Source: Guillardia theta CCMP2712 (Eukaryota; Protista; Cryptophyta). From it: a DNA stretch of 64,000 nt. This document shows positions 19,320 through 62,082 of the stretch, piece after piece. Under the pieces are notes generated by a model that worked only from the letters and a program-made list of their open reading frames with translations, was not told the DNA's origin and made no database searches. Every line of letters starts with the position of its first letter. Positions within the stretch are counted from its first letter, which is position 1. The translations under genes and the position numbers were made by a program. Where the stretch lies: contig NW_005434567.1 of the NCBI RefSeq assembly GCF_000315625.1, positions 143,515 through 207,514 on the forward strand, written 5' to 3'.

Positions 19320-22140
19320 GTCGGGGGGACTCTTTTACAAGATCAGCATGTGTTCTGTTGACCAGGGGTTAATTTCCAGTAAAGCACTAGGGTAGGGTGG
19401 TCTCTATTGTAAGCCAAAAGGGGTAAGGGGTAGTGCTTGACCACTGGACGGGCACTACTACCCCTACCATAATGAAACAGGTTTCACGTGAAGGTGGGGT
19501 ACTTTCGGACGGGATGTGAGCCTTTTTGAGGGTAGGGGTCCCAGTTGGACGGTTGAGGGGTTGTGGGGGGCATTCATGCTGATTTGGTCAAACATGTTAA
19601 CGGGTCAGGCATACTGTTTGGGACAATGGTGGGTAGGGGTACTTTAAAGTTTATAAAGGGGTGGGGTGGGAGGGAACAGGTAAGCAGATTGTAGCTACGA
19701 GCGGGTGGTCTTCAAGGTACATAAAGGGGTAAGGTGTTTCTAGAAGGAAATTAGGGGTGGTACCAAATAACGAGTGTGGGTACGGTGGGGTGGTAGACCT
19801 CCTTTGGGTATCCCGCCGCTCGCTAAATGGTTTTTAAAACAAGTTTTAGGCCATTCATAAAGGAAAGAGTTCCTGGGGGTGGGGTGGTATTTCAGATATG
19901 TCACGGGGGTACTTGCCATCGGGCAGGAAGTCTACAATTTGTGGGGTCAAAAAACTGGAAAAGGGGGGTACGTGAGTTGAGTGAGGAATCATTTGTGGGT
20001 ACATGTACTGTATTGTCCTGTTGGGGTGGGTAGTATGGGTAGTGCAGTCCGTATTTGTTAACCCGTAGGATATCAGGATACTCTACCCTACCTCCGCTAT
20101 GCGACTCTTCGTACCCTACCCCTAATTCTACATGTACCCACCTTGAATGAAAAACTATGGGAGCCCCCACCAGGTATAACAATATATCACTACCCTACCT
20201 GTCCAGACTTCATAGAATTGAACAAATGTTTGCACCCTACCATAAAAACAATATACCCCTAACCAATCCTCATTTTCCTCCCACCCACCCCAGCAAATCA
20301 GCCGACCTTATAAAAGCGCATGTCACCTTTATTTTAAAATGTATCCCCACCACCTTAGCTCCATCCCATTGCTCGGAGGTTTCCCACCCGTATCCCACCC
20401 ACCCACCCACCATCACCTACAACCCCCTAGACTGCGACTACCCACCAGGGAGCGATAAGGAACTTGTCGGAGGAGAATACCGTATGCCATCATGACCTAC
20501 CCGGGGCTTCAGTTGCATTTCAAGTAAAGTAGATGTAGAGGGGGGTGGGAGGGGGGGTGGGAGGTACCTTTTGCTTTCAATTGTTTACTACGTAATATCT
20601 TTGAAAAGAAGAATCTATGAAATGGAGTGGTTTCGAGTACAGGGGACAGGTAAAAATGGTTTTTGATAGACACATAAAAGGTTGCTGAGTCCCTTCGGAT
20701 CAAGGAACAGACCCCCCGGCAGGCCCCGGGGGTGGCCCTCCGGACATCGGGAAGGGAACGTCAGCCTTTTCAGAAGATTATCCCAAGCATTCTCGTTTCA
20801 TGGAGGGAGAGAAAACGAAATTGCATGAGTTCGGCACTCCCAAGCCCAGCGGCCCTCGTACAGGTTTTTAGTACCGGTCCGATTACGGCAGTGACAGTGG
20901 GGCGGATGGCACTGTGGCACTGAGTTGGCGTGGTCGGCCGGGCGCCGCCCGCGCGGCCGGCGGTCAACCGCCGGTAGCCTGACACGGGGGGCCGGCCGCC
21001 GGGCTGGGCCGGGGGGGGCCGCCGGGACCGCCCGGCGGCCGGCGGCGGCCACTGGCTCCGGGCCGCGCCGCCGCGAGCGGCCTGGCAGTCACGACGGTGG
21101 GCCAGGCTGCCAGGGCCCGGCCCCCGGGGGCGCGGGCGCCCGGCCGGGCGAGGGCCTCGGACCGGGACTCCACCGCCTTGACTCAGGCGGCGGCCGGCAC
21201 TGGCAGGCTCAGTGCCGGGGGCGGGCCCGGATGGGTCACACCGGCCCGGCCCCGGGCCGGGCCCGCGGCGCCGTGCTTCACTGCGGCCCCCGGGGCCGCT
21301 AAACTTGGAACTAGCCGCGAGGCCAGCACTGAGCGGCCGCAGCCTCACTGAGTCAGGCCGGAGGCCTCCGACCAGCCTCAGCTTGCTGCACTGAGCGGCT
21401 GGCCGCCGGGGCCGGGCCCGGGGCGACCGGCGTACCTGGCACCGGCCGGGCGGCCCGGGCGGACTCGGACCGAGTCGGTAAGCCTTGAAGGCTGAGTGAA
21501 GTTCAGCATTGAAGGGCCTTGTGCCTTTACTCAAAGTTAAGTTAAAGATCAGTACGAGGACAATCAGGAGAGACTAGGAGGCTTGACCCTGACACTGTCG
21601 CACAGGGCCAAACGGCGAGAAGAGAAAAGACAGCGAGAACCAAACCCAATCCTGCCAACTGCTGTGACTCCGCCGGTGACCGGGCCCCCACCGTCACCAC
21701 TGGGCCGCCCGGCCGGCCGCGCCCGCCGGCGGGCCACTGCAGTGCCGTGCTGACGTCTTTTATGGGGGGCGCAAGGTCTATAGTCAAGATAATGTCACTA
21801 ATATTGACTACGAACGTGAAGACCTTCGAGGTATAAAGGCAGTGGCGAGTAGACAGGGGGTTCAAAATAAAATGATTGGGGGTACAGAAAGCTTATGGGT
21901 CCCTATCATAGGGACATGTACTGAAATACTTGAATTGCAATTGAAATTATTTCAGTCTTTATCTTCTCATTTCTTAATGACTCAAATTTCTGGGGTGGGT
22001 ACATTCCCAACCCTCCAAGGGTGGTGATATAGTCAAAGTTAGGATCTTCCATGGGGGTGGGGTGGGATGCAATGGGGTCATCCATATACCGGTGATATCA
22101 ACTCCAAATTGAAGGAAAAGGGTAGGGTAGTATTGCATTG
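19320..22140. other. Intergenic island: GGGT-rich, then ACCC-rich, then GC-rich palindromic core, then GGGT-rich
   Basis: G-skewed about 19320-20040, C-skewed about 20080-20500, GC core about 20710-21750, G-skewed about 21850-22140. Confidence 0.7.
21526..21670. repeat. Dispersed repeat, least altered copy (TTTACTCAAAGTTAAGTTAAAGATCAGTACGAGGACAATCAGGAGAGACTAGGAGGCTTGACCC...)
   Basis: Related sequence at 33636-33730, 34050-34127 (inverted), 58018-58038 and 49814-49832 (inverted, degenerate). Confidence 0.8.
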
Positions 22141-59294: not shown

Positions 59295-59923
59295 AGCTCC
59301 TTATCACCTGAGTTACACTGGTGAAAGGTTTCCGAGCCCACCGTCCGATCCTTGTGAAAAACCACCTGGTACCTGACGGGAGTCAGTGATTCTGCAAAGA
59401 CAGTTCCGAAGTTCTTTCCAGAAAATTCTGCCTTTTTCCATATTCTATATACAGCTCGGAGGCGGGCTTTTGCGTAGTAATAATGTGCTCGATTATGAGT
59501 TAACCCTTTTTAAACGGGTACTAGGTCATGAGGGGTCATGGATGCTGACTCCAGAGGGGGTAGGGGGGTCATGGGTGGCTCGACATTGGTAGGACATGAG
59601 GGGCGATGATGGCTTTACAAAGGTTTTTTAAGATACGTGACAAGGAGAATTTAAAACTCAAAAGTCATGATCTGATGATATTTTAAGACATAAATTAATT
59701 TAGAACTGTGATTAAAATGATTTTTTAACAGGCACCCTTGTGGCAGCACCCAACACCTCAACCAAGGACCCCTTATTTTGAGTGGTAAAAGTACCGGTAT
59801 ATTTACAGCTTAACCCACACCGGACCCATGTCAGCGATTACCTCAAGGAAGTCTACCCCTACCCCCTATCATGACACAACCTCCTATAGTACCCCACCCC
59901 CTCTGGTCATGTGGATCGGCCTC

Positions 59924-59930
59924 TATAAAT
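59924..59930 (+). promoter_or_regulatory. TATA-box-like element (TATAAAT)
   Basis: About 30 bp upstream of the SelW-like ATG at 59962. Confidence 0.45.
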
Positions 59931-59961
59931 ACAGGGTTGAAGTGAAGACAGATTAGACACA

Positions 59962-60777
59962 ATGGGGTAAGGCCATGTTTAGAGAGCGACGGCGATGACG
60001 GAGGAGGAGGAGATGGAGATGGAGATGATGATGATGATGGAGACGATGATGATGGAGACGATGATGATGGAGAAGATGATGATGGAGATGATGATGATGG
60101 AGATGATGATTCTGGATTGTGAAGATGGAGATGATGGATGAGGGGGGTTTCATTGATCGATCCTGACTTCTAGCTCGTTTGCAGAAAGGTTGTATTGCAA
60201 GTTACACATTCAGGCTGCTGAGGTTACGCTCGACAAGTCCGATGTGAGTGTGTAGGAGGAGGAGGAGGAGGAGGAGGAGGAGGATTTCTTATCAATTGAT
60301 CTCCTCCCACTGCTCAACCCCTTGATTTTGCTGTTTTTGACTTGGCGGTGCAGTGCTGCGGGAGGCAATCCAGGACAAGTTTAAGGCAGGTGAGACTATC
60401 GTATTCTCCATGGTGCCCGAGGAGCTTCGAGGATCTGACTGCCTCTCCTGCTCAGCAGACGTCGAGTTCAAGGAGAAGAAGAGGCTCGACACCAACGGGT
60501 TCTTTGAGGTGGAAATCCTGGCTCCTGCAGAGCATCGTAAGCTCCTGCACTCGATGCGGGCTGGACAAGGTGAGGAGACCTCTCCTCTCCCCCACTTCCT
60601 CTTTCCTCCCCTCCTCTCTTCTGCTCTGCTCTGCTCGACACCTTCTCTTGCTTTCTCTTGCCCTCGGGATCTCCGTAGAAGGCGGCTGGGCAGCAGGTTG
60701 ACTTTTGGACAGGGTTCGTGAACACGGACGAGAAGCGAACTACGATCTTCACGGGCATTTCCATGGCGATGAAGTGA
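59962..60777 (+). CDS. Selenoprotein W-like (Rdx family) protein with in-frame TGA (Sec)
   Basis: Exons 59962-59966, 60185-60243, 60354-60389, 60459-60569, 60713-60777 give MGKVVLQVTHSGCUGYARQVRLLREAIQDKFKADVEFKEKKRLDTNGFFEVEILAPAEHRKLLHSMRAGQGFVNTDEKRTTIFTGISMAMK. This matches the SelW motifs UGY, GFFEV and LxHSxxxGxGxVxT. TGA at 60219-60221. Confidence 0.88.
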
Positions 60778-60807
60778 AGGAAGAGGATGGAGGAGGAAGA
60801 GGGGAGT

Positions 60808-60875
60808 GAGAGCTCATGATGACGAGCCGTGCTGAAACCTCGCAAGAGGAGGACGACTCTGAAAAGCAGCTTCTC
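60808..60875 (+). promoter_or_regulatory. SECIS element (form 2) in the 3' UTR
   Basis: ATGA at 60819; helix GAGCCGTGCT/AGGACGACTC; unpaired AAA at 60835; mini-stem CCTC-GCAA-GAGG; TGAA at 60860; lower helix GAGAGCT/AGCTTCTC. Confidence 0.88.
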
Positions 60876-60920
60876 GCTTCCCCTTCCTCCCTCCCCACCT
60901 CCCTCTGTTCCGCTCTATCC

Positions 60921-62082
60921 TTAAAGTCGAGGAGGGGTCCCGCCTCCTGCCTTGACTATCTCCATGTACAGTCTTGTCTTCGTTAGAATGTTGTTAATAA
61001 TCAAGTCTCTCATACTGTAAACTCGAAGCTTCGTTCTTCCTTCGACTACTGCTTCTGTTACAACGCTCTCCTCCTCCTCCTCCTCCTCCGCCTCCTCCTT
61101 CCTCTCTCCTCTTCTCCTCCTCCTCTTGTATCGGTAGCTAATGAGCTCTGCTCTTCCTCTCTCCCGTCCCTTTCCCTCCTCTCTGCGTCGAAGCTTCAGC
61201 CTGCTCCGACTCGCGCTCGGCGGCGAGGCCAGCAGCCCTTGAAGCACGATTCTTGATATGACCCTCTGCTGCCTCAAGTTCCGCGGCTCCTGCTCTTGCT
61301 CCAGCGCCAACAACTGCTGCTGCTCCCGCTCCCGCTCGTGCTGCTCCCGCTCCTGCTCCCGCCCCTGCTCCTGTGGCTGCTGCTGCTGAAGCTGCTGCTG
61401 CCGCCGCTTCGGCTCCTGCACCTCGTGCTCCTGATGACAGTCCAGCTGAAAGCCGAGCACTAGCCCCAGCTGTCGCTGAGCCTCCTTCCGCCATCCTCGT
61501 GCTTGGCTGCTGCTGCCTTGCTCCCATGGATCGCAGAGACTGCACCACTCCCTCCGTCGCCGCAGCTCGCGAGCGCACTCCAACAGCCGCCTCCTCTCCT
61601 CTGCTCCCTGAAGCAGCGGGCAAGGATGACTCCCTTCCCCTCCTCGCCATCGCAACCAACGCCTGGTTCCTCTCCTCGCTGTCTCCTGCTGCTCCTGCTG
61701 CTCCTGCTGCTCCTGTCGTCTTCTCCTCCTGGCGTTGGAGGCGACCAGTGAGGGACTCGTGATCCCTTGCTCGCGTCGCCATCTTGTGGAGCTCGCCCTG
61801 CGCATGGCCGTCTCCTCCCTCCTCCTCAATCCTCTCACCCTGCCCTTCGGCAGACTCCTTGCTGGGCAGTAGGGCAGCCTCCATCGCAGACCGAGGAGGA
61901 GCGAGAGTGAGTCCATCGTGGGGGTCCCCTACGGTAAGTGAGACCGGTCCTGTATCCTCCAGCCACTGAGTTCTCACCGACAGTGAAGGAGATGTCGAAG
62001 ACAACAAAAGGAGCACCTTGGTCCTACAGGAAACAAGCTTGACCCCATTCCCCTTGCCCCCTGCCTCCCCATCCCCAGCCAT
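60921..62082 (-). CDS. Hypothetical low-complexity Ala/Gly/Glu-rich protein; frame and exons unresolved
   Basis: Two overlapping long minus-strand ORFs. The block SVVTEAVVEGRTKLRVYSMRDLIINNILTKTRLYMEIVK looks like a real terminal exon. Confidence 0.35.

Follow-up and report, generated by a model that had tools for sequence, protein, structure and literature searches.

The window, by which we mean the whole stretch of 64,000 nucleotides analysed here, belongs to the genome of Guillardia theta CCMP2712 (87 Mb in 669 contigs). The region that we read, positions 59700-61100, carries on the forward strand a small gene resembling selenoprotein W (SelW), with an in-frame TGA codon in its second exon and a form-2 SECIS element downstream of its stop codon.

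Gene structure and SECIS element

The coding sequence of the SelW-like gene runs from 59962 to 60777 and is divided among five exons joined at GT-AG sites in consistent phase, whose lengths (5+59+36+114+65) give 279 nt, or 92 codons and a stop. The coding part of exon 1 (59962..59966) is no more than ATGGG, followed by the donor GTAAGG; within the 2.2 kb that precede exon 2, no other ATG exon combines phase 2 with a GTRAG donor. Exon 2 (60185..60243) cannot be extended upstream because of an in-frame TAG at 60171-73, and its translation, (G)KVVLQVTHSGC-U-GYARQVR, contains the beta1 strand and the redox motif. It is followed by exon 3 (60354..60389), which reads (L)LREAIQDKFKA, exon 4 (60456..60569), which reads (A)DVEFKEKKRLDTNGFFEVEILAPAEHRKLLHSMRAGQ, and exon 5 (60713..60777), which reads (G)FVNTDEKRTTIFTGISMAMK and ends with the stop codon TGA at 60775-60777. 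All four introns begin with GT[AG]AG and end with CAG, and the codons that they split are, in order, GG/A, T/TG, G/CA and G/GG. Intron 3 (60390..60455) is special in that its 66 nt are stop-free and in frame, forming part of an open reading frame from 60353 to 60721, and in that it ends in a NAGNAG acceptor (cagcag); since 22 additional residues are found at this site neither in the SelW relatives nor in mouse SelW, its removal by splicing is the likelier reading. A preliminary description of this DNA had proposed five phase-consistent exons, the first with 5 coding nucleotides, and a product of about 91 residues; the exon-wise translation and the canonical splice sites uphold this gene model, and the size of the product comes to 92 residues on counting. 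The sequence TATAAATA at 59924..59931 on the forward strand, 31 nt upstream of the ATG, is possibly the TATA box of the gene. Simple repeats of the GAG/CTC type are plentiful in its introns and in the adjoining DNA.

The SECIS element (60810..60872, forward strand) starts 33 nt past the stop codon, in good agreement with the preliminary description, which had placed a form-2 element about 30 nt after the stop. It aligns to the full Rfam SECIS_1 model with 21.5 bits (gathering score 35) and has a complete core, consisting of AUGA at 60819-22, the unpaired AAA at 60835-37 and UGA at 60860-62. Helix II (60824-33/60850-59) has 10 pairs and two mismatches, and the mini-stem CCUC/GAGG (60838-41/60846-49) is closed by GCAA. 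A long purine/pyrimidine stem extends helix I on the same strand (60789..60895; MFE -60.4 kcal/mol, z -4.8 against shuffled sequences): the purine-rich segment 60789-60813 pairs almost perfectly with the pyrimidine-rich segment 60870-60895 over about 25 bp, which makes helix I unusually long.

In a partial genome-wide scan, the element at 60810-60872 was the third-best SECIS_1 match, with an E value of 4.9 over all 87 Mb; from this figure, the odds of a chance match on the right strand at a distance of up to about 300 nt from this particular stop codon are roughly 1e-5. The SECIS elements of four other G. theta genes score 31.5 bits (canonical SelW), 27.2 bits (thioredoxin reductase TrxR-a), 26.4 bits (SelT) and 24.4 bits (TrxR-b), so that the element of the SelW-like gene is the lowest of the five seen in this genome. 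All of those checked are nevertheless below the gathering score of 35, and a sub-threshold score is thus typical of G. theta. Running RNAalifold on a MAFFT alignment of four G. theta SECIS elements, which is not a structural alignment, gave no consensus. The genome also encodes a tRNA-Sec (72.9 bits), and 14 selenoproteins in 12 families have been published for this organism (PMC7539508).

Relationship to SelW and to the canonical paralogue

Searching the genome with exon 4 led to one paralogue, 54% identical over this exon (locus L014, G000:C44), which encodes NCBI protein GUITHDRAFT_110229 and is named Selenoprotein W by UniRef. It reads ...RVLVTFCGG-TGA-GYAKYYRQLK..., then ...GWLEVEIVYPKEKTKLLHSKKNGQG and YIDTHEKLQRILKGIQDAV, and is therefore a canonical CxxU SelW. 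The gene consists of three exons (L014:1290-1702, G000:C44:267500-267950), followed by a form-2 SECIS at L014:1830-1896. Introns 2 and 4 of the SelW-like gene correspond in position and in phase (phase 1) to the first and the last intron of the canonical gene, respectively, and these two common introns point to an old duplication. The two genes differ in that the canonical one has C-G-G-U, a longer N-terminus and a stronger SECIS, whereas the SelW-like gene has S-G-C-U and two additional introns.

Homology to SelW was judged exon by exon, with an HMM built from the family of the canonical paralogue (its relatives P0003-P0006 and the environmental locus L021). When the window was cut into its 2,807 stop-to-stop fragments, the best match was exon 4 (E 1.9e-7) and the next best exon 5 (E 0.12), in collinear order. 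In the reference family, the part of L021 that follows its Sec codon matches mouse SelW (2NPB) from residue 14 onwards (E 2.6e-10), and this same part scores 20.9 bits against Pfam Rdx, slightly below the cut-off of 22.6 bits. Taken singly, exons 4 and 5 gave no match in Pfam, exon 4 gave none in a PDB search, and in the ESM Atlas exon 4 retrieved unnamed short clusters only. The SelW-like gene carries the family signatures UGY, GFFEV, LLHS and GQGF. It resembles SelW as represented by mouse 2NPB and Pfam Rdx (PF10262) in its size (92 aa), in the position of Sec, which stands some 13 residues from the N-terminus and directly before G-Y, in the common GFFEV, (L)LHS and G-x-G-F/Y-V-D/N-T signatures and in its 3'UTR SECIS; it departs from it in having S-G-C-U in place of C-x-x-U, and HSM for HSK. 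Overall, we consider it highly probable that the locus is a genuine Sec-decoding gene of the SelW family.

The preliminary description had also expected standard gene callers to truncate or miss such a gene, and this seems to be the case. Among 5.8 billion clusters (candidates of 22-70 and 67-213 aa), no protein has three 5-residue words in common with exon 4, and since no database protein contains this exon, the SelW-like gene appears to be unannotated. The canonical paralogue offers a parallel, since its public model (GUITHDRAFT_110229, P0002, 71 aa) joins MIVAVT straight to EILKVF and leaves out the CGGU part. This model is mis-spliced around the Sec codon, which supports the idea that gene callers miss or truncate genes of this kind.

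No orthologue that keeps SGCU was found by word searches, by phmmer with exon 4 or in two metagenome scans. A large phmmer search with the 39 residues of exon 4 returned 0 matches at E <= 0.001, a result that, with so short a query, does not speak against distant kin. The protein profile search recovered relatives of the canonical paralogue only. The first metagenome scan, with narrow patterns, confirmed no locus; the second yielded one, L021, a UxxU protein that is kin to the canonical gene and not to the SGCU variant, and the 3' part of which gave no SECIS_1 match. Three other sets of loci were set aside as candidate orthologues because they belong to other subfamilies: L001 (bacterial-type Rdx), L004 (SelT-like) and L005-L007 (SelH-like).

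The Sec codon and the SGCUG motif

The in-frame TGA of exon 2 (60219-60221) is codon 14 of the SelW-like gene. It lies at the Sec position of the SelW family and is followed by G-Y-A-R, where the relatives have G-Y-A-K. When the 2,322 TGA codons of the window were scored for similarity of their flanks to those of the relatives' Sec codons, that at 60219 (VLQVTHSGC*GYARQVR) scored 31 and the runner-up 15, which confirms the earlier proposal that this TGA sits exactly at the SelW Sec position. This TGA-anchored test replaced an ungapped scan with 19-mers from the N-termini of the relatives, a scan that lacked discrimination since the 19-mers extend into intron 2; its top match, at 19607, was dismissed as chance, the frame there having many stops.

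The TGA belongs to the S-G-C-U-G motif (TCA GGC TGC TGA GGT, 60210..60224, forward strand). Aligned on Sec, the SelW-like gene has V-T-H-S-G-C-U-G-Y, the canonical G. theta SelW V-T-F-C-G-G-U-G-Y and three environmental lineages (L015/16/17, L021 and L023) V-T-Y-U-G-G-U-G-Y, with two TGA codons. Mouse SelW, which was used in the same alignment, has V-Y-C-G-A-U-G-Y. The alignment needs no indel, and in it Ser at -3 replaces Cys and Cys at -1 replaces Gly. The motif that follows beta1, H-S-G-C-U-G-Y, is thus none of C-x-x-U, C-x-x-C or U-x-x-U, and the preliminary description, which had read it as HSGCUGY with the resolving Cys changed to Ser and a Cys adjoining Sec, was right on this point.

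SelW is described in the literature as a CxxU protein, and the only two cases of UxxU SelW in the publications that we found are those of amphioxus and Ostreococcus lucimarinus (PMC7539508); SxCU is not mentioned for SelW in these publications, which give CxxU or UxxU only (PMC7539508, PMC9404770, PMC13188914). The SGCU motif is thus unusual against published SelW. The UxxU proteins of amphioxus and O. lucimarinus (PMC7539508) and those of the environmental contigs (L015-L017, L021, L023) indicate that position -3 is variable within the family, but their -3 residue is a redox-active Sec and their -1 residue Gly, while in the SelW-like gene -3 is a redox-inert Ser and -1 is Cys. TCA, the codon for this Ser, differs from TGA by one base and can be reached from TGC by one non-synonymous and one synonymous step; being close to both, it is compatible with a UxxU as well as with a CxxU ancestor. 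The UxxU type, kin to the canonical G. theta SelW, recurs in environmental or Logan contigs in at least three lineages, with V-T-Y-TGA-G-G-TGA-G-Y (two Sec codons) at L015:~650-700, in L016 and L017, at L021:511-546 and at L023:~515-600.

The motif also resembles the C-terminal tail of thioredoxin reductase (TrxR), which the preliminary description had noted as a letter-for-letter match to GCUG. The organism's own enzymes extend this agreement: of the two G. theta TrxRs, one (TrxR-a, L018, G000:C9:797976-798038, minus strand) ends in L-S-G-C-U-G-stop and the other (TrxR-b, L019, G000:C115:159947-160003) in Q-A-G-C-U-G-stop, each being followed by a SECIS (27.2 and 24.4 bits, respectively), and these two elements were the top two SECIS_1 matches in the partial genome-wide scan. 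TrxR-a and the SelW-like gene are identical over the five residues S-G-C-U-G and over the 11 bases GGCTGCTGAGG. Since the DNA outside SGCUG is unrelated to TrxR, the resemblance looks like convergence rather than gene conversion or common ancestry. Unlike TrxR, the SelW-like product has no FAD/NADPH flavoprotein domain, and its motif lies within the chain, between beta1 and alpha1; with 92 residues, an internal motif and the pentapeptide alone in common, it does not belong to the high-Mr GCUG-type TrxRs. In TrxR, the neighbouring Cys and Sec, flanked by glycines and located on a flexible C-terminal tail, form a selenenylsulfide.

A putative Cys-Sec couple and its alternatives

The explanation that we favour is that the SelW-like gene is an old duplicate of canonical SelW, encoding a product of 92 residues. 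Its mRNA would be spliced as modelled above and the UGA at codon 14 would be read as Sec by means of the form-2 SECIS in the 3'UTR. In the duplicate, the partner at -3, which is Cys or Sec in the relatives, would have become Ser and the Gly at -1 would have become Cys, yielding S-G-C-U-G. The product would remain a small thiol/selenol oxidoreductase of predicted Rdx fold, with its redox couple shifted to Cys13-Sec14, since the one alternative candidate, at -3, is now Ser; this couple would alternate between the selenol/thiol state and an eight-membered selenenylsulfide ring, as in the GCUG tail of TrxR. A vicinal Cys-Sec selenenylsulfide had already been suggested in the preliminary description, on the strength of the motif. 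Judged from the sequence, the loss of Cys or Sec at -3 together with the gain of a rare Cys at -1 looks compensatory. Taken as a whole, this explanation (a second SelW gene, UGA-14 recoded, Cys13-Sec14 as the redox couple) has in our estimation about an even chance of being correct, and that the vicinal couple is the working redox centre is a proposition to which we give an even chance at most, perhaps slightly less.

Its closest competitor accepts the same gene and the same decoding of Sec, but makes Sec14 a lone selenol, in an SxxU centre of the kind derived from CxxC, with glutathione or the thiol of a partner protein as its resolving agent and with Cys13 incidental or regulatory. The chemistry speaks in its favour: vicinal Cys-Sec rings are strained and, to our knowledge, occur only in the flexible tail of TrxR, and ring formation may likewise be strained at the internal beta1-alpha1 site of the SelW-like product. 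The replacement of the -3 partner by exactly Ser would also suit a lone selenol, since T/SxxU and C/SxxU are among the motifs given for selenoproteins other than SelW (PMC13188914). What speaks against it is that the -1 residue is Gly in the relatives, so that the loss of the -3 partner and the arrival of the rare amino acid Cys in one and the same protein would be an unlikely coincidence, and that the flanking glycines recreate the GCUG context. We regard the lone selenol as rather unlikely, if the most serious of the rivals.

The two remaining alternatives question the gene itself. One is that this copy of SelW is silent or in decay: the disappearance of the -3 partner would then reflect a loss of function, and the gene would be unexpressed or untranslated past the UGA. 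This would fit with the fact that no transcript or protein record and no orthologue was found, and with a SECIS that scores weakest among those seen in G. theta. Neutral decay would, however, have broken some of the features that persist at about 50% divergence from the canonical paralogue, namely five exons in frame, eight of eight splice sites canonical, the UGY, GFFEV, LLHS and GQGF signatures and the SECIS core. The survival of the frame, the signatures, the splice sites and the SECIS argues for selection and makes decay the less likely reading, to the point that we consider it improbable. An error in the gene model itself would move the start codon further downstream, perhaps to the ATG that lies at 60410 within intron 3, so that exon 2 would be absent and the TGA never translated. 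Such a model could draw on the fact that intron 3 is stop-free, in frame and provided with an ATG, within the open reading frame 60353-60721, and on the NCBI model of the canonical gene, which avoids its TGA likewise. It would, however, produce a protein devoid of beta1 and of the redox centre, leave the SECIS without purpose, require at the site of intron 3 an insertion that the relatives do not have, and disregard exon 2, whose TGA flank is more SelW-like than any other in the window and which lies in the right order and phase. We thus hold an error of this sort to be very improbable.

The biochemical function of SelW is unclear, and the CxxU motif is regarded as defining the family. A natural SelW that has no Cys at -3 and a Cys beside Sec asks whether the Rdx fold needs the geometry of CxxU, or whether a reactive selenol plus any nearby thiol is enough. 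A vicinal Cys-Sec couple in the SelW-like product would carry such chemistry past TrxR. A bolder version of the favoured explanation, which we think unlikely and place a little below the lone selenol, is that a free-standing protein of Rdx fold rebuilt the selenenylsulfide centre of TrxR in its active-site loop after the ancestral second Sec or Cys had been lost, with a change from UxxU or CxxU to SxCU. If this were true, the protein would provide the first example of a vicinal Cys-Sec redox centre beyond TrxR, and the N-terminal dithiol of TrxR might reduce it directly, so that it would serve as a small carrier, much as if a TrxR tail were working in trans. The G. theta annotation for its part gains an apparently missing gene, and the public model of the canonical SelW is exposed as mis-spliced.

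Two further loci of the same genome deserve mention. The SelT-like locus L004 (L004:852-880; G000:C298, about 20350) reads I-L-Y-C-Q-A-G-TGA-G-Y-K-K, in which three residues separate Cys from Sec (CxxxU), one more than in the usual CxxU, and has a SECIS_1 match at L004:1677-1737 (26.4 bits). The bacterial-type Rdx locus L001/L003 (G000:C53:169707-170021, minus strand) encodes a Cys form that is split by an intron (IEYCTGCRW...LIWSRK..GRFPE) and is the strongest Pfam Rdx match in the G. theta genome, at 42.9 bits.
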